Origin: Macrostomum lignano
Lineage: Eukaryota
DNA length: 64,000 bases
NCBI GenBank assembly: GCA_002269645.1
Contig: NIVC01001092.1
Coordinates: 1-64,000, forward strand
Direction of reading: 5' to 3'
The notes below the pieces were generated by a model, which was given only the letters and a program-made list of their open reading frames with translations, was not told the origin of the DNA and made no database searches. Positions 16,416-64,000 of the stretch are shown here, piece after piece (the first letter of the stretch is position 1; the number at the start of each line of letters is the position of its first letter). The translations under genes and the position numbers were made by a program.

Positions 16416-17077
16416 TATTGTCTCCCAGAGACTTGCGCAGAGCTCTGACCCCGGCTCCGCTCCGCCAGCTTAAGACCCGCGGGATGCACAGCAGAGAAGC
16501 CCAACAGAGCGGCTTGGCCAAAGAGCAAAGAGAATTGTGGCTCCTCCCATTCACTCCCATTTTATTTCCCAATGTGACTTGGCGAGTTAAACATACAGTC
16601 TGCCCCCGTCTGCTCTCCGCAGGCCCTACACTGGATGAAAGTCCACTCTCGGGTTTTCTGTTCCCGCTTCAACCATTGATTGGCAGTTGAAGACACCTCC
16701 CTTTATACTTGCTCTTGTGGCAAATCAGCTGTGACTCAAGCTAAGCTATGAGTAGGCTTAGTGTGTTTGTCTTCTACTTTATTCTTCTCCCCATCATCCC
16801 TCCCAGCGCATAGCAACCAGCTGTCACACCAGATGTGAGTCAATTCTTAAGACTGTAGCATCACCCGCCGTCACGCTGCGCTCAATGCTAGTTTTATTCC
16901 ACTTTTTGCAAGCTAAACATGCGGGCCTCTTAAACGCGAAGATGGACCCGTTGGCCGCCTATGCCGGCCGGTGTTGTGTGCTTTGGCTGCGGCCGCAATT
17001 AAAAAAAGCGGCTGTAATTAGTGCTGCCATTGTCTATCACCTGTTCTTGGCTAGAACAACTCCTTGAAACTCATTAA

Positions 17078-17363
17078 CCTGTTCCAGCTATAGCTATCTA
17101 CCTGTTCCAGCTGTAGCTATCTACCTGCTCCAGCTGTAGCTTTCTACCTGTTCCAGCTGTAGCTATCTACCTGTTCCAGCTGTAGCTTTCTACCTGTTCC
17201 AGCTGTAGCTATCTACCTGTTCCAGCTGTAGCTATCTACCTGTTCCAGCTGTAGCTTTCTACCTGTTCCAGCTGTAGCTTTCTACCTGTTCCAGCTATAG
17301 CTATCTACCTGTTCCAGCTGTAGCTATCTACCTGTTCCAGCTGTAGCTTTCTACCTGTTCCAG
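17078..17363. repeat. 23-bp minisatellite, ~12 copies
   Basis: Unit ACCTGTTCCAGCTGTAGCT(A/T)TCT, containing CAGCTG. Confidence 0.95.
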
Positions 17364-18119: not shown

Positions 18120-18960
18120 TAATTTGTGATTGAATGATTCATGGAGTGTTCTTAAAACTGTGTTTGTATCCCTCTACCCTTTTGTGATTGGCTGATTCGT
18201 GGGGTGTTCTTAAACTGTGTTTTTGTCCCTCTACCCCTATCTTCTTTGTGATTGGCTGATTCATGGGGTATTCTTAAAACTGTGTTTTTGTCCCTCTACC
18301 CCTATCTTCTTTGTGATTGGCTGATTCATGGGGTATTCTTAAAACTGTGTTTTTGTCCCTCTACCCCTATCTTCTTTGTGATTGGCTGATTCATGGGGTG
18401 TTCTTAAACTGTGTTTGTGTCCCTCTACCCCTATCTTCTTTGTGATTGGCTGATTCATGGGGTGTTCTTAAAACTGTGTTTGTGTCCCTCTAGTCCTATC
18501 TTCTTTGTAATTGGCTGATTCATGGGGTGTTATTGTAGTTGTATTTGTGTCCCTCTACCCCTAACTCCTTTGTAATTGGCTGATTCTTGGGTTGCCATTG
18601 TAGTTGTACTTGTGTCCCTCTACCCATAACTCCTTTGTAATTGGCTGTTTCATGGGGTGCTATTGTAGTTGTACTTGTGTCCCTCTAGCCATAACTCCTT
18701 TGTAATTGGCTGATTCTTGGGTTGCCATTGTAGTTGTACTTGTGTCCCTCTACCCATAACTCCTTTGTAATTGGCTGTTTCATGGGGTGCTATTGTAGTT
18801 GTACTTGTGTCCCTCTACCCCTAACTCCTTTGTAATTGGCTGATTCTTGGGTTGCCATTGTAGTTGTACTTGTGTCCCTCTACCCATAACTCCTTTGTAA
18901 TTGGCTGTTTCATAGGGTGCTATTGTAGTTGTATTTGTGTCCCTCTACCCCAATCTCCTT
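18120..18960. repeat. ~65-bp minisatellite, ~13 copies, two sequence variants
   Basis: CTTCTTTGTGATTGGCTGATTCATGGGG...GTCCCTCTACCCCTAT; period of 64-65 measured at 18241, 18306, 18371 and 18435. Confidence 0.9.
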
Positions 18961-19754
18961 TGCCGTTCGATGAACTACTATGTTTTACCTTTATTTCGCA
19001 AATAGTAAAACAACTGCAGAAATGAGGTCTTAATGCTAACTATCAGAGATTACCCCAGAGAAGAATACGTCAGAGAAGAGTGTTAAATTAAGAGTGACAA
19101 TGGTTGTTCAGATCAGCAATTGATTTTGCCTTGGCAAGTCCTTGACAATGGAGGTGGGTGGTTTATGCACAACAACTGGGCTCGGAGCAGAACAAAGAGA
19201 CAATAGAGAGAGCCCAGCTGTGCTTTCGTCAGTCAGTCAGTTCAACTGCCGAACTAACAATACAATAACTATAGCTACTACTGCTATAAATAGTACATGG
19301 CCGGCTGCCGGCGCGCGTGACGTTAAGAAATGTAAGCTGGCTACGGACAAATAGAGTTAGTAATAAAGAAATAAGTAAAGCTGCCTGAGTACAGGTGTTA
19401 TAAATTTATGCCAATAAAATTTGAGGAAATGTTTCGTGCCCGACCTAGCGGTAGAGTCTGTTTGTTTCTCATCAGTGAGCAGCCTGCTCAGTAGTCATAG
19501 GCTGAGCAATGCTGGGCAGAGACTAGTTGCTATGCTTGAAATTAATTATAAAACTTTAAAACCAATTCTCTTACAATTACAGCGGCCAAGCGTCACACAA
19601 CTAAAACTAATCCTTTGCTAATCTGCCAACACTCACCTGGAGACACTGCGGCCTTTGTAAACTGCAAAAGTGTAGGGTAGATAACAAGGTACATGTATAT
19701 TACATGATTAACTGTGGTTCTTAGGAACAAATGAATCACAAGAATTTTTAGAGA

Positions 19755-25736: not shown

Positions 25737-27104
25737 TCAGTTGAGCACAGTGGGAGCGGCCTGGCCGGGGCTCGTCAGCATCGCCAGTCCCGCCTTGCCT
25801 CCGTTGGTTGAGGTGCCACCGGCCGCGGCAGCTGCGGCAGCGGCGGCAGCAGCGGCGGCTGCAGCAGCGGCCGACGCTGGCTTCGGGCTGCCACCTCCAC
25901 CGGACGACTTGAAAGACACCTGCAGGGTCCGGTTGCCCACTGTGTAGCCGTTGAGCGATTGAATGGCCAGCAGGGCCTCTTCGTAGTTGCTCATGGTGAC
26001 AAAGCCGAAGCCGCGGCACTTGCTGGTGCTGGGATCGCGGATCACCTTCACCGTCTGGACCGCGCCGAACGGACCAAACAGCTCCCAGAGGATGCGGTCC
26101 TCGGTCTCCGGCGCCAGGTTATAGACGAAAATGCACCAACCGCCGCTGGGCGTCATTCCGCCGTTTTGAGCCACCACAGTCTGCGCCAGCAGGGCATGGT
26201 TTTGAATGCCTCCCGTGTTCGACATCAGGTCGCCAATGTTGTTCATGCCGCTGTTCATGTGGTGGCCCTGGTACGACTTGATGTAGTTGCGGGACAGAGC
26301 GGCCAGTTGCTGGATCGGGCTGGAGATTTTGGCGGCCGCTGCAGCAGCCGGTGACGGAATGTTGCACTGCTTGAGGAAGCTGTTCACCAGGCTGCTGCCC
26401 TCCTGCCTGGCAGCGCTGGGACTGTTAGCAAACTTCACCGTGATGGCCTCGCCGCCTTCTTCCGGCTCGAAACCGTTCAACCGTTTGATGGCGTCCTCTG
26501 CCTCGCTGCGCTGGTCGAACCGGATGAATGCGACGCCGCGCGACAGGCCGGTCTTGTTGTCGTACAGAATGCGCAGCGTGATGATCTTGCCGCACTGGTT
26601 GAACAGCCGCTCCAGCTCGTCCTGAGTCATCTTCTTGGGCAGGCCGCAGATGTACAGGTTGGCCCCCTTGATCGCTTCGGAGCTGGGACGGGCGAGAGAC
26701 ACCTTGATCGTCTTATTCTGCAGTCTCAGACCGTTCAACGTCTTGATGGCCTTGTCGGCCTCCTTGGGCTGCATGTACTTGACGAAGGCGTAGCCAAGGC
26801 TCTCTCCCGTGGTACGATCGCGCACCAGCTTGCAGCTTTCAACCTCGCCGATGCTAGTGAAGAGGGCGCGCACGTCCTCCTGCGACATGGCCGGCGGCAG
26901 ATAGTTGACGATTAGGTTGGTGCGGTTCTCTGCGGATGCGTGGTACGACGAGGCGATAGCGTTATCTTGGGACTCGTCAGATCCAGCTGGGGAGATCTTC
27001 CCAACCGGATCCCCGGCTCCTGGCAAGCAGTTCAACCTACCGCTGTCGGTGATGCCGCAGGAAGAGTTATTCGTGTCCTTTCCCAGCATATCGCTCGACG
27101 TCAT
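25737..27104 (-). CDS. ELAVL: ELAV/Hu family RNA-binding protein (3 RRMs), intronless CDS, 455 aa
   Basis: RRM1 TNLIVNYLP...[12 protein letters not shown]2 ANLYICGLP...[10 protein letters not shown], hinge, RRM3 [10 protein letters not shown]...[10 protein letters not shown]...LQVSFK; all match Hu/ELAV proteins. Confidence 0.97.
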
Positions 27105-29363: not shown

Positions 29364-29419
29364 GTTGACGACGGATGGTGCACGACAGCACTGCGCCAGA
29401 GCAACCACGCCACAAACAA

Positions 29420-29962
29420 CACTTCAACAGCACCATCAACAGCACTACGACAGCGCTATCAACAGCACTACGGCAGCGCTATCAACAGCACATCAACAGC
29501 GCTATCAACAGCACTACAACAGCGCTATCAACAGCACTACAACAGCGCCATCAACAGCACTATAACAGCGCTATCAACAGCACTACGACAGCGCCATCAA
29601 CAGCACTACAACAGCGCTATCAACAGCACTACAACAGCGCTATCAACAGCACTACAACAGCGCTATCAACAGCACTACAACAGCGCTATCAACAGCACTA
29701 CAACAGCGCCATTAACAGCACTACAACAACGCCATCAACAGCACTACAACAGCGCCATCAACAGCACTACAACAGCGCTATCAACAGCACTACAACAGCG
29801 CTATCAACAGCACTACAACAGCGCCATCAACAGCACTACAACAGCGCTATCAACAGCACTACAACAGCGCTATCAACAGCACTACAACAGCGCTATCAAC
29901 AGCACTACAACAGCGCTATCAACAGCACTACAACAGCGCCATCAACAGCACTACAACAGCGC
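29420..29962. repeat. 23-bp CAA/CAG-rich minisatellite just after the GPCR stop codon
   Basis: Unit ACAACAGCGC(T/C)ATCAACAGCACT. Confidence 0.95.
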
Positions 29963-30826: not shown

Positions 30827-31314
<488 letters not shown>

Positions 31315-34140: not shown

Positions 34141-34523
34141 ACGTATCTGTTTCCCCATAGATATTCGTATTGATATTCAATTTCTAACAAATGCAACAAA
34201 ATAAACCTACTTGTACAGCTCGGATTTGCATGAAAATTTACAGAAAAATTATTACACACAAAACAAACACCTCTGTGAAACTTCAAGTCCATCAGACCAC
34301 GCAAAGCGGAATGGCAAGAGTTTTAAAGGTGCTCGTATTTATAATGCATTGTATATGCGCACAGTGTATAACATGTATGCTCATTTGCAATACTTGTACA
34401 GCTCGGATTTGCATGAAAATTTACAGAAAAATTATTACACACAAAACAAACATCTTTGTGAAACTTCAAGTCCATCAGACCACGCAAAGCGGAATGGCAA
34501 GAGTTTTTTTAAGGTGCTCGTAT
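34141..34523 (+). repeat. Left terminal inverted repeat (~70 bp terminal segment plus ~1.7 x 183-bp units)
   Basis: TGTACAGCTCGG at 34212 and 34395 (period 183); reverse complement of 42060-43009. Confidence 0.9.
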
Positions 34524-36194
34524 ATCGTATATTTATATGATGCACATATAGCTTGCTAGCTCGTAAGCGCGATGCAACGCGAAGTGCAATACCTGCATAT
34601 AGGCCCGTATATTATACATGTTACATGTACCCAGCTCATGCATGCGTGACTGCGAATTATGTCGGCACTGTTTTGGTGAGTATTCCACTCACGTTGCAAA
34701 TGTAAAATTCAATTAGCAGAATGTAATTTTCATTGCTATTAATGCAAATAGCTATTGTCCACAAACATTTCTGTTGTTAACCCTATACCAATTCAGTCTC
34801 TGATCGTAGCTGCGTAATAAGTCATAAGTCTGAATTACTAACGCGAGCCAAATATTGCATGTACATGTATAAGCCAGCCCTGTGAAGCGCAGGTGCCAAT
34901 TGTAGACTCCTCTTGGCTTGGCACGCAAGCCTAGCACAAAAATAACGCAACATTTGGCCTAATTTCTACACCACTCTATGCAACCGTTGGGATATGCAGC
35001 TTGGGTTAAAAATACAAACTTGTTTCGAAATTTTCAAAGTGCCAGTCGCTGAGAACTTTTGATGTATTTAGTATTACATGTTACGTACATGTGCATTTAT
35101 GTATATGCACGCGTGGTACTTCTAATAACATCAATAAAAGCGTGGAAAGTTTTGATGAAATGCATGTAACCAATAAAAAGGTTATAACAGGAATTTAAAT
35201 TACAACAAAGATGAATACTTAAATAGATTTACATACAAAATGTACTGAACAGTTCGGCTCATAATCGCTCTATACCAACCATTAGATCGAGCATGTGTTC
35301 CCTAATAATATTACTCTTAGTAGTCATCACGCTGTTGTCAAGCTCTCGATTAAATCGGAGCCACAAAGATCCACTGTGGCGAGAGGTCCTACTTTTAGTG
35401 TAGAAGAGGCCCGATTGAAAACCCTGAGAAGTCCCATGAAAGTTGCAAACTGAACTATTTAAATGAGCGCTGCTCCACTCTCTGAAAGAATATCGAACAC
35501 CTGCATGGGCCGCGGTTAGAGCCCCCTGTTTTGTTCGAGTGGGAATGGTTGTTCGCCTGTTCATGTCCATGTCGGTCGATCCCCAATTCGAGTGGTCCTT
35601 AGCATAAATTGATTATATTGCATTCCATGGCTCGTAATCGAACATCTGCATAGGGGGATGAAAAAAGCGGGCGAACAAACAAAAACAACGGGATGGGAGG
35701 GCGGCCATACATATTTTTCTAGTCAGAAAATTAGCAGCAAAAAGCAGCAGCCTCACGACCCTTCTGTACATGGAAGATTGGCCGTCGCGACTGCCACAGG
35801 TGCACTCAGAACCAGATCTAGAGAACCTCTTGCTCCAAAAATAAGGAACTGGAGAGATCCATTTACGAGTAATGGCGACATTCACGTACATGTACAGTTG
35901 TGTAAAAATCAAGTAACTAATGCGAAAACATGTCTTTGCACGTTGCGCAACAAAAACCTGGATCGGTCGACCCTTCGACGCATTCTGTGTGATACCAACG
36001 AAGACAGGAGGGACATTCAATCTAGAAATGAAGGGGTGAGCGAAAATTAACCGCATTATGCTGTAAGCACAACTCGACTGCATATTCGATCGACTGCATC
36101 TTAAGCTGGAGTTCAATCTGTATGACTGCTTTAAGCAATCTGCTTGGCAAAAGTGAAATTCGTAGTTAAAAAAATAAAAAAAGAAAAATTACTC

Positions 36195-37070
36195 TTATTT
36201 TACCCAATTTATGCGACGACTAACGCCCGAAGCGTCAGGTTCTGTGTTGCTACAGGCTGAGCACTCTTCCTGCGTTCCTCCATAGCTGTAGGCCTGGATC
36301 ACATTCCAGATATACTGTCTGTATCTTCCGAGAGCCGTCGGATTGTTCTTGAACCGGAGACCAGAACCAAGAGCTAATGCCCTAGCGTACAGGCATACAA
36401 ACACTCCGCAACTATGACCATCAGATTGCATTGTTCTCGACATTGTGGCCAGCTCATATGGCTTCGATGTGCTGCTGGTGAATACCGGAGCGCTTTGGTC
36501 AACAAATGCCATTATTCCATCGGAAGCCAATATGCGGCTAGAAAGTTAACAGAAATTTTACAGATTTGCCACATCAGTACTTAAGTTCACTTTTATTTAT
36601 TCTCTGGACATGTACACAAACTATTGTACTCACTTCCATTTGCGAATTAGAACATGAAACTCTTGCTTCTCTTGCGCATTACGCCGAATCGAATCCAGCA
36701 CAAAGACCTTTCGTTCAACGCCGCAAATAACGATCAAGTAAAAATGCCCGCTGTTTAAAATAGGCACAATTATTTGATTCAGGCCCTGCAACATCAAGAG
36801 AGCAAATAATTTTATACCTCAAATTGGTGCATGCGTAAGATTTTCATTGAGAATTCACTACAAGTGTACAAATTTATTTTGCATCAAAAACGACATTATT
36901 GTTTCATTAACAGAACTTGCCTTCCATCCGAGAGTTCTTCTCAGCAAGTTCTGGACTCCATCGTTGAACTCATCTCCTGATAGATTCAATATGTAGTAAA
37001 AGTCGCCCTCACTTATTACAATCCTTTGGGCGTTGTTCGATGTGATAGCAGTGCAATAGGCCAATAAAAT
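36195..37070 (-). CDS. Ulp1/SENP-like (peptidase C48) cysteine protease exons, probably the spliced C-terminus of the transposase
   Basis: Exon 36785-36634 reads GLNQIIVPILNSGHFYLIVICGVERKVFVLDS (catalytic His and Asp). A phase-2 intron leads to an exon from 36537 with QSDGHSCGVFVC (oxyanion Gln and catalytic Cys). An exon starting at 37070 (ILLAYCTAIT) follows the transposase donor at 37213. One junction near 36950-36860 is unresolved. Confidence 0.75.
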
Positions 37071-37167
37071 CTATCGCGAGTAATGCAAGAGGGACAGGAA
37101 AAGATAATGGTGAAAATAGGTCATAAGTCAACTGAATTTTCTATTGTAAGTATTTACGTATACTTAC

Positions 37168-39882
37168 TTAAGTATTTATTGTAAGTAAGTAAGTATTTAT
37201 GAAAATACTTACCGTGTAGTCTAACAGGTTGCTTCCCAACAAACTTTGACGATGCTCTTGCGTTACGGGAATATCCGTTCCAGAGCCAGGAAGGGTGAAG
37301 AGAATCTGGCTATTATCGCTTTGCACCGTTCTTCCTTTCTGCCGCGTGCTCCTCTTGCTTTGCCACCTGCTTCTACTGTTATCTGCGGTTCCATTTTGAC
37401 TGGAATTTTTATTGGGTCTGTTCCTACCAGCTGTGCATCCCGGAAGTTTTGATTTTGGGTTGCTCTGTTGGGACTGACTGCTACTCTTTTCCGTTTCGTC
37501 AGGATCGGCGACATTAGCAAAATACTGATTGCTACTAGTATCTGAGTATCTTGAACGCTTGCTATTTCTCGACCTTTTTTGCCAACCTTCAGTTGCAGCT
37601 TCTTCTGAGATTGATGACTTCCTTTTTCTGCAAAAACTTGGAGCAGGTACTTTGCTCGAGATGGTGCACTCTGAAACTCTACGAAGTACAAAGGGTACAT
37701 AATTCTCTACGAAGGTACTCAGCCTGGACTTGGTGTTAAATCGACTTTTCACAGAAGAAAACCAACTCTCCACATGAGCATTTGAGTAAAAAGACTTTGA
37801 ATTTTTAGCAATCAAATGATTCCATGTAAATATAGCCCATAGAGGGAGGATGGACAGGTATCTAAGCAAGAAAAAGTTTATCAATCGAGGGTTGTAGAAT
37901 TCATTATCTGTCAGATGCGAATGACCGGTTTTATGCGCGAGAGTATTTTGAATTGTGGTAAATTCCTTTTTAAAGTATTCGTAGTATGGAGAATTTTTCA
38001 GTATCGCGTCACCTTCCGCGTTCATACTTGCATGATCCTTGTCTTGAAGTATAAATGAGTCTTTGTTGATTGATTCGGAATACTCTGGAACATGGCCATC
38101 TCTCAGAAAATTTGCTACCCTAGTTCTAGCAGCAACGGTTTGCTCGGCATACGGAGATCCAAATATAATAAGCGTGTCCATGATGAAGTTGACGGATAGT
38201 TTTTGCGTACTGGAATACTGAATTAAAGAAAATAACTTCAAAAATAGCTGACGGCTTCGCTGGTTCAAGGAGTGTTTTTTGCAGTGGTCCGAAATTGACT
38301 TTATAATATGATTGCTACACAGAAAAACGCCATATTGAATCTCGCTAGGGGTGTCCGTAATAAAGTAATTGTAATGCATTTGGATGTACGTTGTCACGTC
38401 CGTGTGGTGGAAGTCTAAGCATGAATGAATTTGCGCCCATGAAAAGTCGGAAATAAAAAGAATATTTAGGTCAACAGAAAAAGGTGAGTTTACACAGTGC
38501 AGAATTCTATGGCGGAGGAGTTTTAGAAAGTGAGAAATGGATGCAACGTTATGGGAGTCTGTAATCATATTCCCAACTGGCGACGATGGAACAGAATCAG
38601 TAGCAGTTGTGATGACAGAATAGAGTAGAACAGGATGAGGTGAACAGTTTTTTTCTATTAACGAGCCAGTAGCGTCGATATGCAGCACTGTTGGAGTACG
38701 AGCTGACATAATTGCTCTAAGAAGCTGTATTTCAAGGTTGGACAATAATACAACACGTAGTGGATCTAAACTACGCTCCATTATGACTCCAGGAAAAATC
38801 GGATGCGGATATCGAAGTTTAAAAATGTCTTGTAGACCTCCAAGCTCAACAAAAAGAACAGAGTGTAACCTCTCGTCTTTCTCCATTTTACTTTTTAAAT
38901 TATACATCACAGTTTTGGTTTTGCACGCATCAAAGTTGCACGACAGAATGAATGGTAAATTTTCGATCGCAAGAAAGCGTCTTCTGAATGCTTCAACGGC
39001 ACCGGCCTCTTTTATATCGTCGTAAATTTCACGTTTTTCTGATTCGGTCGTTCTACGAAAACAACTAGCCGTAGCATCTTGATGGTTTAACCTTCCCGTG
39101 ATAATAACCTCCCAAGACCATGTTGTTCCGTCAACACGTGGTGGTCTTCTCATTATTAAAGCGTAATTTCTTCTGCATCCTTCAATTTTGCATTCCGCTC
39201 TAATTGTCCAAAAATTCTGCTTACTTTTTCTTGAATTCTGCTTTCGAATGTGATTATAGCCCGTCATCCTCAAACAGCACGTAGCGACTTGTCGCATAGC
39301 ACGGCAAACTGCTTCATTAAGAAAACTTTTTGAAAACGTATACTTTGGTCCAGATTGACTATCTTCCACCGATAGGTTAATTTTGCAGATATCACTCTCC
39401 GATAGTTCGATCCGATTCTCCCCAGTTTCATCAGAACTTTCCTCAACTTCTGGTGGTTGTTCGTTTGACGTCGATTGTGATGAGCTTGTAGCATTCAAAT
39501 CTACTTGTACACGCGTTGTTCTCTCTTCTCTATTCTCTGCGTTGCAAAAATCTTCGCTTTTCTGTCCATCGTCGTTTTCTACTATAGGGTCGCTGGGTTC
39601 ATAAATCGTTTTATCAGCCTGACGTCTCCCGTTTAACGTTGAATGTTTTTGGCCAGCTGTATTATATGCACGTCTATTTTTCGATCTCTGAGCTTTCTTT
39701 CCTTGGACTTTTCCAGTCGGTTTATTTTTCTTGCTCTTCTGGCTACATGCACTGTTGGAACGTCCTGCAGCATCAGTCGTCTCAGTTGACCGGGGTACAT
39801 GTAGCGACCTATTCATTAGACCCCAAAGATATACCCGCGATCGCAGTCGGTTTCGAATTTTGAGTGCCCGACATAAGAACAC
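37168..39882 (-). CDS. MULE/NOF-like DDE transposase, main exon (first ATG at 39816, splice donor at 37213)
   Basis: 904-codon open frame with LHIDATGSLI (first catalytic Asp), FISDFSWAQI (second Asp), the Mutator-type CxxH motif FLCSNH, and a candidate catalytic Glu in NAHVESWF. An upstream WTIRAECKIEGC segment looks like a DNA-binding or zinc domain. Confidence 0.85.
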   Translation of the reverse strand: MFLCRALKIRNRLRSRVYLWGLMNRSLHVPRSTETTDAAGRSNSACSQKSKKNKPTGKVQGKKAQRSKNRRAYNTAGQKHSTLNGRRQADKTIYEPSDPIVENDDGQKSEDFCNAENREERTTRVQVDLNATSSSQSTSNEQPPEVEESSDETGENRIELSESDICKINLSVEDSQSGPKYTFSKSFLNEAVCRAMRQVATCCLRMTGYNHIRKQNSRKSKQNFWTIRAECKIEGCRRNYALIMRRPPRVDGTTWSWEVIITGRLNHQDATASCFRRTTESEKREIYDDIKEAGAVEAFRRRFLAIENLPFILSCNFDACKTKTVMYNLKSKMEKDERLHSVLFVELGGLQDIFKLRYPHPIFPGVIMERSLDPLRVVLLSNLEIQLLRAIMSARTPTVLHIDATGSLIEKNCSPHPVLLYSVITTATDSVPSSPVGNMITDSHNVASISHFLKLLRHRILHCVNSPFSVDLNILFISDFSWAQIHSCLDFHHTDVTTYIQMHYNYFITDTPSEIQYGVFLCSNHIIKSISDHCKKHSLNQRSRQLFLKLFSLIQYSSTQKLSVNFIMDTLIIFGSPYAEQTVAARTRVANFLRDGHVPEYSESINKDSFILQDKDHASMNAEGDAILKNSPYYEYFKKEFTTIQNTLAHKTGHSHLTDNEFYNPRLINFFLLRYLSILPLWAIFTWNHLIAKNSKSFYSNAHVESWFSSVKSRFNTKSRLSTFVENYVPFVLRRVSECTISSKVPAPSFCRKRKSSISEEAATEGWQKRSRNSKRSRYSDTSSNQYFANVADPDETEKSSSQSQQSNPKSKLPGCTAGRNRPNKNSSQNGTADNSRSRWQSKRSTRQKGRTVQSDNSQILFTLPGSGTDIPVTQEHRQSLLGSNLLDYTVSIFINTYLLTINT

Positions 39883-40539
39883 ATAAAGTGGTGTAGAGTG
39901 ACGAAAGCCAGTTGGAGGAGGATAAATTCTACTGGCTTCTACCAGGACAGATTGAGCCTAAAATAGGAATAACCCATTTAAAATTACGGATAAAGATCCA
40001 GTTTCGACATTGCATGCATTCAGAAAGTTATGAAACTGCAAATACCTGCTCTTTTGATGGCAGTCCAAAACAGAAAGTTACTAGAATTGTGGTCAGTACT
40101 ACGAAGAAAAATACGAGTCCACGAGTCCACATATTTGAAAAATTCAATGGTCAGTTAAGTTATTGCTTATATAGAATCTAGTATTCGTTCAAGAGAAAAT
40201 GAGAAAATTTACTTAGAATTGAAATTAAAGAAGCAACTAGTAAGTGGGACGCAGGGACCAAGCGTGCAGGTCTACATTTATCAGAGATTAAACTAAAAGA
40301 GAGGGGTGGGGAGTGTGCTGATAGAAAAATAGGGGTGGGTGCGCGACTAAAGAAAGAGACGATAATAAATAGCCAATCAGAATGCAGCAAGGGAGAGAGA
40401 TAGCTGGACAGAGAGGCAAAAAACAGTAAACAGGACGAGTGCACATGAACTGAAGATAGATATAAGAAAGTAGCTACGCAATATAGGTTGTTAGACTGCT
40501 GGAGTGCAGTGGAGCTGGAGATACACAAATTCCTCTCAG

Positions 40540-40631
40540 GGCTGCAAATTGGAGGAGAAAGAAGAGAGATGAAATGAGGAGAAGAGAGAGTAGAAAGTAG
40601 AGATGAGAGAGATGAGATGAGACAGAGAGAG

Positions 40632-40694
<63 letters not shown>

Positions 40695-41780
40695 AGAGAA
40701 GAGATAGATGAGATGGGAGAGAGAGGGAAGAGGAGAAAGTAGAGATGAGAGAGAAGAGAGTAGAGATTAGAGAGTGGAGAGAGAGGAGAGAGGAGAAAGT
40801 AGAGATGAGAGAGAAGAGATTAGAGATTAGAGAGTGGAGAGAGAGGAGAGAAGAGATTGGAAGAGAGGAGTCATAAGAGGGGAAAGAAAATAGTACAGAG
40901 GAGAGATTTGAGAACATATAAGAGTAAAGATAACAGAATAGAGAGTAGAGATGATCGAGAGAGCAGATACGAGAGTGAACAGACGACAGATGGTAGAATA
41001 GAGAACAGCGGAGATAGAAGTGATAAGAGAGAATCTATTACAGACACGAAAGCAGAGAGGAGAGACAAAGGGAGAGAGAGAAGTGGAGTGAGGAAAGAGG
41101 AGAAAAGATGGGAGAGAATCGAGAGCAAAAGGGAGAGAGGGGAAAGGGAGAGACAGGGGAGAGGAGAGGAAAGAGAAGAACGGAGAGGGGAGAGAATATA
41201 GTAAGGAGATGAGAGATGGGAGAGCAGAGAACAGAGAGATGAGTGGAGAGATAAGAGCGAGGGAGAGAGAGATGGAGAGGAGAGGTGAGAGTAGTGGAGG
41301 AAGTTGAGAGAGGAGAGATGATAAAAGGAGACTACAGATCAGATAATGAGAGAGAGTATGAGGCAGGAAAGATATATTACAGAGGATTGAGACGAGAGAG
41401 GAGAGAGTAAAGAGATGATAGAAGAGATGAGAGACGAGAGCAGATCGGGGGAGAGTAGAGAGAAGAGATCGGAGAGAGGAGAGAAGTGGGAAGTGTCAAG
41501 AAAGAGGGGAGAGTGAGGAGTGAGAATTTATACAGAGGGGAGAGAGAATAGAGAGTAGAGAGCAGAGATAAATAAGAAGAGATAAGAGAGCAGAAAATAA
41601 GAAGAGAAAGGAGAGATGATAAAGCAATGAGAGAGAAGAGAGTAGAAAAACCAAAGAAAGATAAGGAGAGACAAGAAAAGATCGGGGAGAAGGAAGAAAT
41701 AAAGGAGAGAGGAAAAAAGAGATGAGATGAGATGGGAGGGAAAGGATGAGAGACGATAGAGAAGAGAGGAAACAGTAGAG
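40540..41780. repeat. GA-rich low-complexity tract inside the transposon
   Basis: Purine-rich + strand including a pure (GA)n run at ~40635-40690. Confidence 0.9.
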
Positions 41781-42059
41781 AATTGACTGAAGTTTCAAAG
41801 GAATCTAGGGACGTAGGGAGGCGCAGGGACAGAGGCCGGAGTTTGCCAATACTTGTTTTAAGACAGACATTGCCTGACATTCTTGGGCAACACCACAAGC
41901 CAACATGTGATTAATGCTTGCCTCAAATTCTAATTTTATACGAACTTATACTCCACTTTTATTTTTAACTCTATCCTATAATTATTAACAAGTTCTGTGT
42001 TTGAGTATAACTTCATATTCTGGAACACAAGCAAAAGTAGTTCCGGCTGGGATTGGAAT

Positions 42060-43009
42060 TCATATACAATGCATTATAAATACGAGCACCTTTAAAACTC
42101 TTGCCATTCCGCTTTGCGTGGTCTGATGGACTTGAAGTTTCACAAAGATGTTTGTTTTGTGTGTAATAATTTTTCTGTAAATTTTCATGCAAATCCGAGC
42201 TGTACAAGTGTTGCAAATGAGCATACATGTTATACACTGTGCGCATATACAATGCATTATAAATACGAGCACCTTTAAAACTCTTGCCATTCCGCTTTGC
42301 GTGGTCTGATGGACTTGAAGTTTCACAGAGGTGTTTGTTTTGTGTGTAATAATTTTTCTGTAAATTTTCATGCAAATCCGAGCTGTACAAGTGTTGCAAA
42401 TGAGCATACATGTTATACACTGTGCGCATATACAATGCATTATAAATACGAGCACCTTTAAAACTCTTGCCATTCCGCTTTGCGTGGTCTGATGGACTTG
42501 AAGTTTCACAGAGGTGTTTGTTTTGTGTGTAATAATTTTTCTGTAAATTTTCATGCAAATCCGAGCTGTACAAGTGTTGCAAATGGGCATACATGTTATA
42601 CACTGTGCGCATATACAATGCATTATAAATACGAGCACCTTTAAAACTCTTGCCATTCCGCTTTGCGTGGTCTGATTGACTTGAAGTTTCACAGAGGTGT
42701 TTGTTTTGTGTGTAATAATTTTTCTGTAAATTTTCATGCAAATCCGAGCTGTACAAGTGTTGCAAATGGGCATACATGTTATACACTGTGCGCATATACA
42801 ATGCATTATAAATACGAGCACCTTTAAAACTCTTGCCATTCCGCTTTGCGTGGTCTGATGGACTTGAAGTTTCACAGAGGTGTTTGTTTTGTGTGTAATA
42901 ATTTTTCTGTAAATTTTCAAGCAAATCCGAGCTGTACAAGTAGGTTTATTTTGTTGCATTTGTTAGAAATTGAATATCAATACGAATATCTATGGGGAAA
43001 CAGATACGT
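42060..43009 (-). repeat. Right terminal inverted repeat (~4.8 x 183-bp units plus terminal segment)
   Basis: TGTACAAG at 42201, 42384, 42567, 42750 and 42933 (exact period 183). Confidence 0.92.
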
Positions 43010-46045: not shown

Positions 46046-47837
46046 ATGGGTGGCTGTTGCTGCAAGGAGGAGGCTGGCTCTGACAGTGGAGAAAGAGACC
46101 GCCTCCTGACCAATCCTGTATCAGATGATGACGATGACAATGTGTAAGTCTGATCATACTTTGTGTCTTGGAACTTTTAATTTAACCCAATTGCTTTAGG
46201 AAAATTGAATTATTATAGAACTAAATCTCAACCAATTGCTTTCTGAGGGTCTACGACTATTGAGTGCCAGTGACAATTGACAAGTGACATTTGGCAGCCA
46301 GGGACATTTGACTGCCAGTGACATTTGACTGCCAGTGACATTTGACTGACAGTGACATTTGACTGCCAGTGACATTTGACTGCCAGTGACATTTGAATGT
46401 TAGTGACATTTGACTGCCAGTGACATTTGACTGCCAGTGACATTTGACTGCCAGTGACATTTGACTGACAGTGACATTTGACTGCCAGTGACATTTGACT
46501 GACAGTGACATTTGAATGTTAGTGACATTTGACTGCCAGTGACATTTGACTGCCAGTGACATTTGACTGACAGTGACATTTGACTGCCAGTGACATTTGA
46601 CTGACAGTGACATTTGAATGTTAGTGACATTTGACTGCCAGTGACATTTGGCAGCCAGGGACATTTTACTGTCAGTGACATTTGAATGTTAGTGACATTT
46701 GACTGCCAGTGACATTTGACTGCCAGTGACATTTGACTGACAGTGACATTTGAATGTTAGTGACATTTGACTGCCAGTGACATTTGACTGCCAGTGACAT
46801 TTGACTGCCAGTGACATTTGACTGACAGTGACATTTGACTGCCAGTGACATTTGACTGACAGTGACATTTGACTGCCAGTGACATTTGACTGACAGTGAC
46901 ATTTGACTGACAGTGACAATTGACTGCCAGTGACAATTGACGGCCAGTGACAATTGACTGTCAGTGACATTTGGCAGCCAGTGACATTTGGCAGCCAGTG
47001 ACATTTTACTGCCAGTGATTATTGACTGACAGACATTTAACTACCAACCCTAGCCCTAACCCTAAACCTAATCCCTAGACCCTAACCTTAATAGTCTGCA
47101 GTAAAATGACATAAAACCGCTTCTTCTAGGGTATGAAAATTCACTGGCCTCAGAAACCTTGAGCAGCCCATTTGCTGTGCTGCAGTTAAAGAAGCGCAAT
47201 TTTAAAGTTAGGCTGCACTTGAAGCAGAAAAGACGATTTTTATGCAATATTTTATACATTTAGCTATATGGAATTATAGCTCTTGAAACAATTTAAATTC
47301 GTACAATTGATCAGCCAGCGCTGCAAGTTAAGCAGATTCGGCCGAGGTTAGTTTGCAATCAAGCTACAATTGCGACTTGTAATTAGTGCTTCAAATTTTT
47401 CTAGCCCGCAGCCCAACGGAGGCGGCGCTGGCGGTGGCCCGGGCAAGTCGGACCGGCCGGACGTGCAGGCGGCGCTGTCGCAGATTCTCGAGAACGTGGC
47501 CGTACAGGTGATTGACATCGGCCAGACCGGGCCGCAGGTTGTTGAACGCCAGGAGTACACGCAGCGGGCCAGGCAGCTGCTAAGGGCTGGCAGCGAGCGG
47601 CTGCGCGGACATCAGCAACCGAAACGGCGTCTGCCTGTTCTGGGCGTCGGTGGAAACAGCGGCGGCACCGGCGCTGCGCCGTCATTGGCCGACACTCTGG
47701 GCCGGGAGTCGCCGCCGTCAGCTACAGACTTGGCCTTGGCGGCGGAGCTGGCCAGGAGAATAGCGGAGGCGGCCCTGTCCGTGTCTGTCAGAGTGCCTGA
47801 GGATCTGCTGGTGATGTTCGGTGTGGCATCTGCTTAG
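46046..47837 (+). CDS. LAMTOR1: Ragulator subunit LAMTOR1 (p18), two exons: 46046-46143 and 47405-47837
   Basis: Exon 1, not in the ORF track, reads MGGCCCKEEAGSDSGERDRLLTNP (myristoyl Gly2, palmitoylatable Cys residues, acidic dileucine signal). Phase-2 intron GT|GTAAGT...TTCTAG|C. Exon 2 has QAALSQILENVAVQVIDI...ERQEYTQRARQ and VRVPEDLLVMF, matching LAMTOR1. Confidence 0.88.
46262..47040. repeat. 17-bp minisatellite in the LAMTOR1 intron
   Basis: Unit G(C/A)CAGTGACATTTGACT with a TGAATGTT variant; followed by degenerate CCCTAA-like repeats at ~47044-47090. Confidence 0.95.
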
Positions 47838-50946: not shown

Positions 50947-50984
50947 CAATCGAAGAATGCTAGAAAATGGGAGCATGAAGTCAT

Positions 50985-51852
50985 TAACAATTCATTCTAT
51001 ACCTGCATTTGTGGGATAGATTAGCAATCCATTCTATACCTGAATTTGTGGGATAGATTAGCAATCCATTCTATACCTACATTTGTGGGATAGATTAGCA
51101 ATCCATTCTATACCTGCATTTGTGGGATAGATTAGCAATCCATTCTATACCTGCATTTGTGGGATAGATTAGCAATCCATTCTATACCTGCATTTGTGGG
51201 ATAGATTAGCAATCCATTCTATACCTGCATTTGTGGGATAGATTAGCAATCCATTCTATACCTGCATTTGTGGGATAGATTAGCAATCCATTCTGTACCT
51301 GCATTTGTGGGATAGATTAGCAATCCATTCTATACCTGCATTTGTGGGATAGATTAGCAATCCATTCTATACCTGCATTTGTGGGATAGATTAGCAATCC
51401 ATTCTATACCTGCATTTGTGGGATAGATTAGCAATCCATTCTATACCTGCATTTGTGGGATAGATTAGCAATCCATTCTATACCTGCATTTGTGGGATAG
51501 ATTAGCAATCCATTCTATACCTGCTTTTGTGGGATAGATTAGCAATCCATTCTTTAACTGCATTTGTGGGATAGATTAGCAATCCATTCTTTAACTGCAT
51601 TTGTGGGATAGATTAGCAATCCATTCTATACCTGCATTTGTGGGATAGATTAACAATCCATTCTATACCTGCATTTGTGGGATAGATTAGCAATCCATTC
51701 TATACCTGCATTTGTGGGATAGATTAACAATCCATTCTATAACTGCATTTGTGGGATAGATTAGCAATCTATTCTATACCTGCATTTGTGGGATAGATTA
51801 GCAATCCATTCTATACCTGCATTTGTGGGATAGATTAGCAATCCATTCTATA
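50985..51852. repeat. 37-bp minisatellite, ~23 copies, immediately upstream of CCDC124
   Basis: Unit ATTAGCAATCCATTCTATACCTGCATTTGTGGGATAG. Confidence 0.97.
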
Positions 51853-52474: not shown

Positions 52475-56391
<3,917 letters not shown>

Positions 56392-56880: not shown

Positions 56881-60059
<3,179 letters not shown>

Positions 60060-60199: not shown

Positions 60200-63100
60200 C
60201 GACTCTGAGGAGACTTTAGCGACTCTTAGTGACTGTGGGGAGACTCTAGTGACTCTGGGGCAACTCTTAGTGACTGTGGGGAGACTCTAGTGACTCTGGG
60301 GCAACTCTTAGTGACTGTGGGGAGACTCTAGTGACTCTGGGGCAACTCTTAGTGACTCTGGGGCAACTCTTAGTGACTGTGGGGAGACTCTAGTGACTCT
60401 GGGGCAACTCTTAGTGACTGTGGGGAGACTCTAGTGACTCTGGGGCAACTCTTAGTGACTGTGGGGAGACTCTAGTGACTGTGGGGAGACTCTAGTGACT
60501 CTGGGGCAACTCTTAGTGACTGTGGGGAGACTCTAGTGACTGTGGGGAGACTCTAGTGACTCTGGGGCAACTCTTAGTGACTGTGGGGAGACTCTAGTGA
60601 CTGTGGGGAGACTCTAGTGACTCTGGGGCAACTCTTAGTGACTGTGGGGAGACTCTAGTGACTCTGGGGCAACTCTTAGTGACTGTGGGGAGACTCTAGT
60701 GACTCTGGGGCAACTCTTAGTGACTGTGGGGAGACTCTAGTGACTGTGGGGAGACTCTAGTGACTCTGGGGCAACTCTTAGTGACTGTGGGGAGACTCTA
60801 GTGACTGTGGGGAGACTCTAGTGACTCTGGGGCAACTCTTAGTGACTGTGGGGAGACTCTAGTGACTGTGGGGAGACTCTAGTGACTCTGGGGCAACTCT
60901 TAGTGACTGTGGGGAGACTCTAGTGACTCTGGGGCAACTCTTAGTGACTGTGGGGAGACTCTAGTGACTGTGGGGAGACTCTAGTGACTGTGGGGAGACT
61001 CTAGTGACTCTGGGGCAACTCTTAGTGACTGTGGGGAGACTCTAGTGACTCTGGGGCAACTCTTAGTGACTGTGGGGAGACTCTAGTGACTGTGGGGAGA
61101 CTCTAGTGACTGTGGGGAGACTCTAGTGACTCTGGGGCAACTCTTAGTGACTGTGGGGAGACTCTAGTGACTGTGGGGAGACTCTAGTGACTCTGGGGCA
61201 ACTCTTAGTGACTGTGGGGAGACTCTAGTGACTGTGGGGAGACTCTAGTAACTGGGGAGACTCTAGTGACTCTGGGGCAACTCTTAGTGACTGTGGGGAG
61301 ACTCTAGTGACTGGGGAGACTCTAGTGACTGTGGGGAGACTCTAGTAACTGTGGGGAGACTCTAGTGACTGTGGGGAGACTCTAGTGACTGTGGGGAGAC
61401 TCTAGTGACTGTGGGGAGACTCTAGTAACTGTGGGGAGACTCTAGTGACTGTGGGGAGACTCTAGTGACTGTGGGGAGACTCTAGTAACTGTGGGGAGAC
61501 TCTAGTGACTGTGGGGAGACTCTAGTGACTGTGGGAGACTCTAGTGACTGTGGGGAGACTCTAGTAACTGTGGGGCAACTCTTAGTAACTGTGGGGAGAC
61601 TCTAGTGACTCTGGGGCAACTCTTAGTGACTGTGGGGAGACTCTAGTGACTCTGGGGCAACTCTTAGTGACTGTGGGGAGACTCTAGTGACTGTGGGGAG
61701 ACTCTAGTGACTCTGGGGCAACTCTTAGTGACTGTGGGGAGACTCTAGTGACTGTGGGGAGACTCTAGTGACTGTGGGGAGACTCTAGTGACTCTGGGGC
61801 AACTCTTAGTGACTGTGGGGAGACTCTAGTGACTGTGGGGAGACTCTAGTAACTGTGGGGCAACTCTTAGTAACTGTGGGGAGACTCTAGTGACTGTGGG
61901 GAGACTCTAGTGACTGTGGGGAGACTCTAGTAACTGTGGGGAGACTCTAGTGACTGTGGGGAGACTCTAGTGACTGTGGGGAGACTCTAGTAACTGTGGG
62001 GAGACTCTAGTGACTGTGGGGAGACTCTAGTGACTGTGGGGAGACTCTAGTGACTGTGGGGAGACTCTAGTAACTGTGGGGAGACTCTAGTGACTGTGGG
62101 GAGACTCTAGTGACTGTGGGGAGACTCTAGTAACTGTGGGGAGACTCTAGTGACTGTGGGGAGACTCTAGTGACTGTGGGGAGACTCTAGTGACTGTGGG
62201 GAGACTCTAGTAACTGTGGGGCAACTCTTAGTAACTGTGGGGAGACTCTAGTGACTCTGGGGCAACTCTTAGTGACTGTGGGGAGACTCTAGTGACTCTG
62301 GGGCAACTCTTAGTGACTGTGGGGAGACTCTAGTGACTGTGGGGAGACTCTAGTGACTCTGGGGCAACTCTTAGTGACTGTGGGGAGACTCTAGTGACTG
62401 TGGGGAGACTCTAGTGACTGTGGGGAGACTCTAGTGACTGGGGAGACTCTAGTGACTGTGGGGAGACTCTAGTAACTGTGGGGAGACTCTAGTGACTGTG
62501 GGGAGACTCTAGTGACTGTGGGGAGACTCTAGTAACTGTGGGGAGACTCTAGTGACTGTGGGGAGACTCTAGTGACTGTGGGGAGACTCTAGTGACTGTG
62601 GGGAGACTCTAGTAACTGTGGGGCAACTCTTAGTAACTGTGGGGAGACTCTAGTGACTCTGGGGCAACTCTTAGTGACTGTGGGGAGACTCTAGTGACTC
62701 TGGGGCAACTCTTAGTGACTGTGGGGAGACTCTAGTGACTGTGGGGCAACTCTTAGTGACTGTGGGGAGACTCTAGTGACTCTGGGGCAACTCTTAGTGA
62801 CTGTGGGGAGACTCTAGTGACTCTGGGGCAACTCTTAGTGACTGTGGGGAGACTCTAGTGACTGTGGGGAGACTCTAGTGACTGTGGGGAGACTCTAGTG
62901 ACTCTGGGGCAACTCTTAGTGACTGTGGGGAGACTCTAGTGACTGTGGGGAGACTCTAGTAACTGTGGGGCAACTCTTAGTAACTGTGGGGAGACTCTAG
63001 TGACTGTGGGGAGACTCTAGTGACTGGGGAGACTCTAGTGACTGTGGGGAGACTCTAGTAACTGTGGGGAGACTCTAGTGACTGTGGGGAGACTCTAGTG

Positions 63101-63375
63101 ACTGTGGGGAGACTCTAGTGACTGTGGGGAGACTCTAGTGACTGTGGGGAGACTCTAGTGACTGTGGGGAGACTCTAGTGACTGTGGGGAGACTCTAGTA
63201 ACTGTGGGGCAACTCTTAGTAACTGTGGGGAGACTCTAGTGACTGTGGGGAGACATCTAGTCACCCTGGGGCTTCTCTAGTGACTCTGGGGAGACACTAG
63301 TGACCCTGGGGAGACTCTAGTGACTGTGGGGAGACATCTAGTCACCCTGGGGCTTCTCTAGTGACTTTGGGGAGA
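60200..63375. repeat. ~3.2 kb satellite of 20/21-bp units upstream of RBBP4
   Basis: GACTCTAGTGACT(G/C)TGGGG(A/C) alternating with CAACTCTTAGTGACTGTGGGGA in a higher-order pattern. Confidence 0.97.
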
Positions 63376-64000
63376 CACTAGTGACTCTACGGCGCTTTTA
63401 TAATGACTATGGGCCATAGAGTCGTATCTGAGGCGTACTATAGTAGATGCAGAATCACCGAGTTGCGTCTAAAGCGCATCTGCGCCATTTTTTGAATTCG
63501 AAACGCATTTCGTTTTATAACAACTATCATGATCAGTCTACGTGACTCAACAGTCGCCTCTCCATCGGATTGCAGTCGGTTGAGTCGTTAAAAAGTCACA
63601 AGAGTCGCTCCAGAGCCGCTAGGGTCACTAGTGGGTGGTTTGCAATGACTCTTTAGCGATTCTTGTCACGGTAACTTTTCAAAACTTATCATTGGTAGCT
63701 TGCCATTTCCGATTTTTAAACTCAAATAAATAAGGATTCCCTGTTTCTAATCTGTTTACTACATTATATTAAGAGAATTATTAATTAACAGCAAAGAGAA
63801 GAGTAGGCAAATAATAATAGTTATAACGGACATACATATCAGAATGTTTGCATGTCTTTCGTGTTTTGTTTGTTCACCAAAAATATTAAGCAGCCAGCAG
63901 CAAGCAACAGAAGAAAACTGGGGGAAGGGCTCAGGGAATTTGGGTAGCGAGAGTTTTCATATCAGATTGAATAAAATAACAGGGGTCACTGGGCCCAGTG

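Follow-up and report, generated by a model that had tools for sequence, protein, structure and literature searches.

Here we describe a mobile element in a 64,000-nucleotide stretch of the genome of the flatworm Macrostomum lignano (assembly GCA_002269645.1, contig NIVC01001092.1, positions 1 to 64,000 of the forward strand), which we call the window and number from its first letter. Our analysis leads us to conclude, with considerable confidence, that positions 34141-43009 are one copy of an 8.9-kb foldback DNA transposon of the autonomous type, belonging to the Rehavkus group and resident in a flatworm genome. This conclusion is carried by the homology of its transposase to published Rehavkus domains, by sharply bounded inverted ends that bear tandem repeats, and by a gene model in which splicing appears to fuse the transposase to a C48 (Ulp1/SENP-like) protease and a PHD finger.

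Results

The transposase matches Rehavkus domains end to end

At the centre of the element lies an uninterrupted minus-strand open reading frame (ORF) of 904 codons (37168-39882), the 2.7-kb frame in which a first-pass annotation of the bare sequence had recognized DDE-like and CxxH motifs of a transposase. Taken alone, its 904-aa product matches no Pfam family at E<=1, no PDB sequence and no protein in a word-indexed search, and a word-index search with a 59-sequence alignment returned no match either. An exhaustive HMMER search recovered 609 proteins at E<=1e-3, 18 of them at E<=1e-30, the nearest being a 295-aa fragment that is 48% identical. The motifs first noticed by eye hold up in the alignment of this family, where D403 (DATGS), T405, D479 (TDFSWA), C522-x2-H525 and E705 (N..VENWF..VK) are invariant or nearly so; the columns of D403, D479, C522-x2-H525 and E705 are those aligned to Mutator-like elements (MULEs) in a published alignment, the C(2)H motif being found also in hAT, P and Kolobok.

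The family was placed with a profile built from the window ORF and 118 homologues (E-values for a nominal database of 1e6), and the supplement of Dupeyron et al. 2019 (PMC6446971) supplied the references, six Rehavkus DDE domains and a set of canonical MULE domains. All six Rehavkus domains (1_TC, 3_TC, 1_HR, 1_DY, 1_AP and 2_NVi) are matched by this profile over the whole span between the first Asp and the Glu, with 120-273 bits (E 3e-79 to 4e-33), and the window ORF alone matches three of them, Rehavkus-1_TC, -1_HR and -3_TC, at E-values that range from 2e-15 through 6e-15 to 8e-12 (about 25% identity, residues 400-712). Run as controls against the same profile, MuDR-6_SBi, MuDR-5_OS, Jittery, MUMET1 and MUJITOS2 score at most 5.5 bits. 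Because the Rehavkus match runs end to end and the MULE controls score nothing, we assign the element to the Rehavkus group, which the first-pass annotation had already named. A rough neighbour-joining tree without bootstrap nests the published Rehavkus sequences inside the family and groups the window with the C48-PHD-bearing relatives P0002, P0003 and P0004.

The relation to canonical Mutator, in contrast, is remote. Calling the element a Mutator transposon, as had been done at first, is apt in the loose sense of Yuan & Wessler, who grouped Rehavkus with MULEs, but not in the sense of a domain match: the Pfam models MULE, Transposase_mut, DBD_Tnp_Mut, FAR1 and SWIM match neither the window ORF nor any of 47 long relatives (E<=0.1), so that the profile check once proposed for the element, on C48 or MULE, succeeds for C48 (see below) and fails for MULE. 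No transposase Pfam model of any kind matches among the 47 long family members, and the family profile finds only noise among PDB sequences. A profile-profile comparison (hhalign) of the family core with five MULEs is weak (probability 19%, E 1.2e-3), with the second Asp and the C(2)H motif in register. An AlphaFold2 model of residues 190-800 (predicted local distance difference test, pLDDT, 86; predicted template modelling score 0.81) has as its best solved Foldseek matches Hermes (hAT; E 4.5e-4) and ISCth4 (IS256 family; E ~1e-3, probability 0.99-1.0), with RAG1 further down. In the N-terminal domain, modelled as a four-stranded sheet (pLDDT 85), C9, C37, C42 and H73 are invariant (C, C-x4-C, H).

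Compared with canonical MULE and IS256 transposases (ISCth4, structure 6XGX), the family shares a DDE core whose second Asp is followed by C(2)H, a catalytic Glu set in an N..[VS]E..[FN]..K motif, possibly a WRKY-like N-terminal zinc finger, and a structural match at probability 0.99; it differs in the missing sequence-profile match, in template modelling (TM) scores of 0.2-0.33, and in much longer spacers between the second Asp and C(2)H and between C(2)H and the Glu. Profile, fold and N-terminal data fit the published placement of Rehavkus beside the MULEs, either as their sister group or as an outgroup; it is the MULE outgroup in Dupeyron et al. 2019 (PMC6446971). We find it barely credible that the transposase comes instead from a different superfamily (hAT, Zisupton/KDZ, P or Kolobok): Hermes has the best Foldseek E-value, Pfam MULE is silent and the C(2)H motif is common to several superfamilies, but six published Rehavkus domains are matched end to end, no hAT, KDZ or other transposase Pfam model matches in the 47 relatives, the ISCth4 fold match is of high probability, and the second Asp and C(2)H align, if weakly, with those of MULEs. 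Two particular candidates were examined and dropped in view of the strong Rehavkus match: Zisupton/KDZ, suggested by its link to Ulp1, which gave no KDZ or CxC Pfam match, and hAT, suggested by Hermes, which gave no hAT Pfam match.

Foldback ends built on 183-bp units

The element is enclosed by inverted arms of 367 nt each (34141-34507 and 42643-43009) that are 98% complementary, with 6 mismatches; the foldback ends made of 183-bp units that had been seen by eye are therefore there as described. Each arm consists of a unique 67-nt tip with tandem 183-bp units inside it. The tip starts ACGTATCTGTTTCCCC and is unrelated to the 183-bp unit; the tip sequence of the element is ACGTATCTGTTTCCCCATAGATATTCG. 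The window contains exactly two occurrences of a 32-nt piece of the tip, where chance alone would give 0, and the inverted repeat ends abruptly at both outer edges (34141 and 43009). Since the tips share their ACGTAT with M. lignano relatives that are flanked by target-site duplications (TSDs), we take 34141 and 43009 as the true ends. The two arms are unequal, with about 1.6 units on the left and 4.8 on the right. The element had also been called young, and it may be so, judging by the 98% identity of its arms.

Outside the exons, which are listed further below, the element is laid out as follows.

34141-34207, plus strand: left terminal tip, unique 67 nt with a sharp repeat start; its ACGTAT is common to the tips of TSD-bearing M. 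lignano relatives
34208-34507, plus strand: subterminal array of the left end, with about 1.6 copies of the 183-bp unit
34508-35916, minus strand: internal non-coding stretch 3' of the gene, with ORFs that lack a Pfam match; the model stop codon ends at 35917
40555-41760, no strand: GA/CT-rich low-complexity block of 1.2 kb between the 5' end of the gene and the right array; GC skew 0.60
42061-42941, minus strand: right subterminal array, 4.8 units of 183 bp with 99% matches
42942-43009, minus strand: tip of the right end, repeating the left tip in inverted orientation

The stretch at 34508-35916 is probably 3' untranslated region or spacer. The block at 40555-41760 is purine-rich (GA, or CT on the gene strand); it may be the counterpart of the 'minisatellite' described from Rehavkus elements, and it could be a promoter, a spacer or a later expansion.

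A predicted five-exon gene joins the transposase to a protease

On the minus strand, the ORF extends into a five-exon gene model whose protein is 1114 aa long from the first ATG (39816) with a GC donor at intron 2, or 1131 aa with an alternative donor (a slash marks the splice junction in what follows).

37213-39882, minus strand: exon A, with the basic N-terminus, the Cys3-His zinc-finger domain, the DDE core, the linker and the start of C48; donor ACG/gtaagt
Within exon A, minus strand: first ATG at 39816; D403 at 38676-38674; D479 at 38448-38446; C522/H525 at 38319-38308; E705 at 37770-37768
36921-37070, minus strand: exon B, the N-terminal half of C48; donor AAG/GCAAGT at 36921
36870, minus strand: alternative in-frame donor of exon B, TTT/GTACAC, which adds 17 aa
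36634-36785, minus strand: exon C, with the C48 His at 36746-36744 (GHFY) and Asp at 36695-36693 (VLDS); donor GTGAGT, phase 2
36204-36537, minus strand: exon D, with the C48 Gln at 36428-36426 and Cys at 36410-36408 (QSDGHSCG) and the first CxxC of the PHD finger; donor TGG/gtaaaa
35917-36021, minus strand: exon E, the second half of the PHD finger (IECPSCLRWYHTECV...FCCATC) and the stop codon; acceptor tttctag/ATT, phase 0

The first-pass annotation had placed the C48 His, Asp and Gln/Cys motifs in downstream exons, where we find them (36634-36785 and 36204-36537), and had noted phase-consistent splicing at the last junction, which in fact extends to all four. Introns 1-4 measure 142, 135 (or 84), 96 and 182 nt. 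All AG acceptors are canonical, and introns 1, 3 and 4 have GT donors; intron 2 offers two in-frame donors, of which the GC is preferred and the GT is the alternative.

All four junctions fall inside motifs that are conserved in the intronless relatives P0002, P0003 and P0004. At junction 1, LLDYT/ILLAYC aligns with WLEQD/IINAFLLC of the relatives; at junction 2, LGWK/GLNQIIVP aligns with their INWKTVENIAVG without a gap when the GC donor is used, the alternative donor inserting 17 residues; at junction 3, KW-N/RILAS aligns with TWNAFVAS, the intron splitting the Asn codon of a conserved W-N motif; and at junction 4, INW/IECPSC aligns with DKWITCSSC. Moreover, the C48 domain begins in the same exon as the transposase. 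Given junctions inside conserved motifs and a C48 start within exon A, we regard the fusion by splicing of transposase, C48 and PHD as well supported by these comparisons, as is the original proposal of a transposase spliced to an Ulp1/SENP-like protease. From N- to C-terminus the predicted protein comprises a basic region, the Cys3-His zinc finger, the DDE core with C(2)H and an all-alpha insertion domain, a low-complexity linker, C48 and the PHD finger; distant relatives carry transposase, C48 and PHD in this order in a single reading frame.

The C48 protease and the PHD finger

The spliced C-terminus matches Pfam PF02902 (Peptidase_C48) at E=3e-9 (37.5 bits, cut-off 20.7), and exon D alone gives a weak match to the same model (E=0.09). 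SENP2 is the best match by sequence in the PDB, with GHF (His), LDS (Asp) and QSDGHSCG (Gln, Cys) aligned to its corresponding residues. Across 17 sequences, the window and 16 relatives, the His, the Gln and the Cys-Gly (Q165, C171, G172) are invariant, and some relatives have Asn in place of the catalytic Asp. Within clan CE, the substrate of such a protease could be SUMO, NEDD8, ubiquitin or another protein.

Directly behind C48 lies a feature that the first reading had missed, a Cys4-His-Cys3 PHD finger split by intron 4 (CSAC...W/IECPSC..WYH..C...CCATC). Its pattern is intact and aligns with the PHD fingers of relatives, in which the Pfam match reaches E=3e-8.

At least 16 representatives end in a C48(+PHD) module, their identity to the C-terminal region of the window protein being 16-26%, and in many C48 carriers the PHD finger follows the protease directly. 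Among the 47 long relatives, 11 have a PHD match, eight a Peptidase_C48 match (best E 4.6e-19) and six an OTU match; weak matches to Peptidase_C57 and Peptidase_C5 also occur in relatives. The ratio of nonsynonymous to synonymous polymorphism (pN/pS) among three P0002-like copies is 0.2-0.5, the C48-PHD part being uninformative with 3+3 differences.

C-terminal domains alternate across the family between C48, OTU and a third domain with the signature 'WGG...NTC.[IV]DN.L', followed later by CxxxxC and 'PP[FI]L'. This third domain replaces C48 in 13 of the top 150 representatives (P0008, P0009, P0011-P0015, P0017, P0018, P0029, P0031, P0074 and P0099), and P0074 has a DUSP domain behind it (E 7.5e-6, below the cut-off). 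Pfam UCH does not match it; judged by sequence, it looks like a diverged USP-type ubiquitin protease.

Relatives in flatworms and elsewhere

The named members of the family come from M. lignano (multi-copy, all deposited as 'hypothetical protein'), the sea cucumber Holothuria leucospilota and a metagenome-assembled genome (MAG) labelled 'Sedimenticola sp.'. The MAG proteins (P0013, P0017 and P0162; MES9883988.1, MES9880808.1 and MES9881301.1) are eukaryotic Rehavkus-type transposases, and probably represent host (animal) DNA binned with the symbiont.

Two M. lignano foldback elements of assembly GCA_002269645.1 have defined ends, namely L004 (5687-18590, 12.9 kb) and L005 (6319-18580, 12.3 kb), from NIVC01000139.1 and NIVC01000741.1. 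Like the window element they carry a transposase of the same family (429 bits to the family profile), begin their tips with ACGTAT (tip start ACGTATGAAACATT) and bear tandem arrays in their inverted arms, in a host of the same phylum. They differ in their greater length of 12-13 kb, in arms of 1.9 kb that are 100% identical, in array units of 11/63 bp as against 183 bp, in clear TSDs of 9 bp (GTACACTGT) and 8 bp (TTATTAAT), and in having neither C48 nor PHD. Both look very recently active, and proteins of their type (PAA77430.1 and others) are deposited as 'hypothetical protein'. A second M. lignano family (L006, at a contig start) yielded no informative inverted repeat.

Metagenome contigs with P0002-like genes (L001-L003) show a sharp right boundary and a 186-bp array, with no left end or inverted partner. 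In L001, this array (14120-17280, about 15 units) follows the intronless P0002 gene; its period is near the 183 bp of the window, and the two sequences are unrelated. Both periods come close to the length of a nucleosome repeat, perhaps without significance.

Evidence against a single intact insertion

Several observations weigh against our reading of positions 34141-43009 as one copy of an autonomous-type Rehavkus transposon with a selected accessory module. As regards the transposase, the low Foldseek TM-scores do not separate a hAT-like from an IS256/MULE-like fold, and the fold matches of the N-terminal domain, although WRKY domains make up four of the top seven PDB entries, are not significant (best E 0.19, probability 0.82, TM 0.53). 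In the gene model, we infer the start codon and the choice of intron 2 donor from sequence. The Pfam C48 match spans only profile positions 79-186 of 217, the C48 His is followed by Phe and not by the usual Trp, and the Pfam PHD match (E=0.008, 16.6 bits) lies under the curated cut-off of 24 bits; both the role of the protease and its substrate are wholly putative. The nearest flatworm relatives whose ends are defined, those of M. lignano such as L004, lack the C48-PHD module, which shows that it is not needed for spread. Neither blastn nor tblastn found further copies or fragments of the element in the 64-kb window. Finally, the nine bases outside the two ends (GCTTTCTTA and GATGTTGTA) form no TSD. 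The two flanks show no relationship to each other, and nothing convincing emerged when they were searched for longer, diverged inverted repeats.

As to the missing duplication, an exact and near-exact search for 5-10-mers found no 8-10-mers with at most two mismatches at the ends or within 6-7 nt of them; the sole 8/9 match sits 20-29 nt outside the ends, in AT-rich flanks, and we judge it to be at chance level. The flatworm relatives have 9-bp and 8-bp TSDs, so the absence is a trait of this copy and not of the family. With real ends and no TSD, the flanks of this copy do not derive from one simple insertion, and it is likely that two copies recombined, that a short piece of flank was deleted, or that the assembly was joined via near-identical copies. 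The element had first been described as apparently intact, a word that fits its coding sequence and ends but not its insertion site.

We consider it about evenly balanced whether the copy is a simple mobile insertion at all or the product of ectopic recombination between two copies, or else of an assembly join of different copies through near-identical interiors. A TSD is lacking between ends that are true by their ACGTAT tips, the sequences on the two sides are unrelated, the arms differ in unit number, and ectopic recombination is known for foldback elements; the extreme repeat-richness of the window, with its many tandem arrays, makes an assembly join a realistic possibility. On the other hand, the coding sequence and both tips are intact, leaving the copy still mobilisable, and a small flanking deletion can also remove a TSD.

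Surroundings in the window

Minisatellites are abundant in the window (1-64000), with at least 18 separate arrays that have units of 16-65 bp and reach 3.2 kb in length.

6590-7928, 11791-12553, 14335-14988, 18181-18962, 29415-29962, 46260-47018, 50983-51852, 57305-58978 and 60221-63386: examples of minisatellite arrays

Long 'ORFs' that overlap such arrays and lack a Pfam match (for example 14607-16415 and 57055-58980) are probably artefacts. A perfect (CTAT)122 microsatellite (30827-31314, 100% matches) lies 2.8 kb left of the element.

Several other coding sequences were noted, all on the minus strand. At 25737-27104, an intronless gene encodes a 455-aa ELAV/Hu-like protein with three RNA recognition motifs that is 83% and 78% identical to M. 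lignano proteins, the next named matches being mostly from other flatworms. Two overlapping long ORFs at 1872-5011 encode an NWD1-type winged helix and an NWD2-type beta-propeller, as in a NACHT-WD40-like gene; the two are read in different frames, which implies a frameshift or an intron. An RBBP4/CAF1-p48-like ORF (58929-60038), with a histone-binding N-terminus and WD40 repeats, stops early, after 369 aa, and has a large minisatellite array on either side; it may be a retrocopy or a single large exon. A 513-aa ORF at 54850-56391 combines QRICH1 and DUF3504 domains, a pair linked to Crypton-derived genes.

Discussion

The window element resembles described Rehavkus elements in several respects. 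As characterized in the literature, Rehavkus elements carry subterminal tandem repeats in long terminal inverted repeats (TIRs), encode a PHD finger and are flanked by 9-bp TSDs (PMC6446971; bioRxiv 2024.12.02.626372). The element reported here shares with them homology over the full length of the DDE domain, long TIRs that bear tandem repeats subterminally, a protein with a PHD finger and an internal simple or minisatellite block, and its 8.9 kb lie within their size range of 5-18 kb. It differs in its host, a flatworm as against the arthropods and annelids of PMC6446971, in an identity of about 25% to the references, and in this copy's lack of a 9-bp TSD. A further difference is the C48 domain, which the published descriptions of Rehavkus (PMC6446971; bioRxiv 2024.12.02.626372) do not mention, though C48(+PHD) carriers include the nearest neighbours of Rehavkus-1_TC, 3_TC and 1_HR in our set.

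Proteases of this kind have precedents in several other transposons. In plants, Ulp1-carrying MULEs (KI-MULEs or VANDAL KIU; MULEs of melon, rice and grapevine) are likewise Mutator-related elements with a C48 Ulp1-like domain, and their KIU/VANC proteins have been linked to anti-silencing (PMC13317346). There, however, Ulp1 has an accessory gene of its own (VANC/KIU), in canonical MULEs that are often non-TIR, whereas in the window C48 is fused to a Rehavkus transposase and followed by PHD. Ginger1 of Hydra and other animals is similar in that its transposase carries a C-terminal Ulp1 or OTU protease, once with PHD, but its DDE domain is Gypsy-integrase-like and unrelated to the window family, and it has 4-bp TSDs and short TIRs; Ulp1 (+PHD) has also been recorded in 'MuDR-type' transposases of hydra and lancelet (Bao et al. 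2010, PMC2836005). Compared by architecture, Drosophila FB-NOF elements (RepeatMasker class MULE-NOF) are alike in having inverted ends of tandem repeats around a large coding insert. FB-NOF has been linked to Rehavkus.

We propose that the zinc-finger domain would bind the tip, the repeated subterminal units, or both, and that more 183-bp units may strengthen this binding, an idea cited for subterminal units in bioRxiv 2024.12.02.626372. The DDE core would then carry out cut-and-paste transposition and yield the 8-9-bp duplications seen in relatives. With low confidence, we further suggest that the protease-PHD module is a selected accessory: the PHD finger would bring it to chromatin, where the protease would remove a ubiquitin-like modifier, with SUMO as the default guess for C48, from proteins of the host or the element, to the benefit of the element's transposition or expression. 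Since M. lignano relatives without the module have spread, it would be an accessory and not a requirement.

How removing a modifier might help the element can be read in more than one way. One possibility, which we rate as somewhat unlikely, is that the module serves transposition itself, by taking SUMO or ubiquitin off the transposase or off repair factors at the site of excision or insertion, or by steering insertion to particular chromatin. In relatives a single reading frame encodes the module together with the transposase, joining the two covalently, and such a role was proposed by Bao et al. for the Ulp1/OTU domains of Ginger1, Mutator and Helitron proteins (PMC2836005). Relatives without the module, however, appear recently mobile, with perfect TSDs and 100% identical arms.

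Another reading, which extends a proposal of the first-pass annotation and which we think rather unlikely, is that C48 works as a deSUMOylase on host silencing factors at element chromatin, with PHD as its targeting domain, so that the module would be an anti-silencing device. The catalytic residues are intact and invariant across distant relatives, many of them have PHD joined immediately after the protease, and the OTU protease that takes its place in six of the 47 points to selection for the removal of ubiquitin-like modifiers as such; in plants, the Ulp1-bearing VANC/KIU proteins of VANDAL MULEs accompany a sequence-specific loss of silencing (PMC13317346). Yet the reading is drawn from sequence and analogy, according to the same review (PMC13317346) it is not known precisely what the Ulp1 domain does in plants, clan CE enzymes also act on NEDD8 or ubiquitin or as viral processing proteases, and the M. 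lignano relatives have spread without the module. In its broadest form, that Rehavkus transposases have repeatedly been joined to chromatin-targeted, active deconjugating enzymes (C48, OTU and possibly USP-like plus DUSP) which erase SUMO/ubiquitin-dependent heterochromatin or piRNA-type (PIWI-interacting RNA) silencing at their own copies, the idea is speculative and we would not expect it to hold; if true, it would be an animal counterpart of the anti-silencing by VANC/KIU in plants.

That C48-PHD is a passively captured fragment of a host gene, as in Pack-MULEs, with no function for the element, is disfavoured and in our view very improbable: plant MULE Ulp1 domains have been described as transduplicated host sequence (PMC13317346) and the exons here are interrupted by introns, as expected of a captured genomic fragment, but at least 16 representatives have the module in the same order at no more than 16-26% identity to the window's C-terminal region, the catalytic His, Gln and Cys are invariant, intronless relatives have the module in frame with the transposase, and C48 starts within the transposase exon.

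Much of this architecture is already known: Rehavkus elements with repeat-bearing TIRs and PHD have been described, and reports of 2008-2010 cover Ulp1 (+PHD) on 'MuDR-type' transposases as well as the Ulp1/OTU domains of Ginger1. What the present element adds is its host phylum, its particular family and its spliced gene structure. The element is well preserved and essentially ordinary, and it would be no surprise to a transposon specialist. Its description nevertheless establishes that foldback elements of the Rehavkus type occur in flatworms, and that Pfam models miss this transposase family entirely, with the result that its genes are filed as 'hypothetical protein', even inside a bacterial MAG. 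It also adds a clean, apparently full-length transposase-C48-PHD fusion to a family in which this module, or an OTU alternative, recurs widely, and so keeps alive the question of why DNA transposons carry SUMO and ubiquitin proteases. Transgenesis and RNA interference exist for M. lignano, and a Macrostomum relative therefore offers a workable system in which the role of such a protease could be tested.

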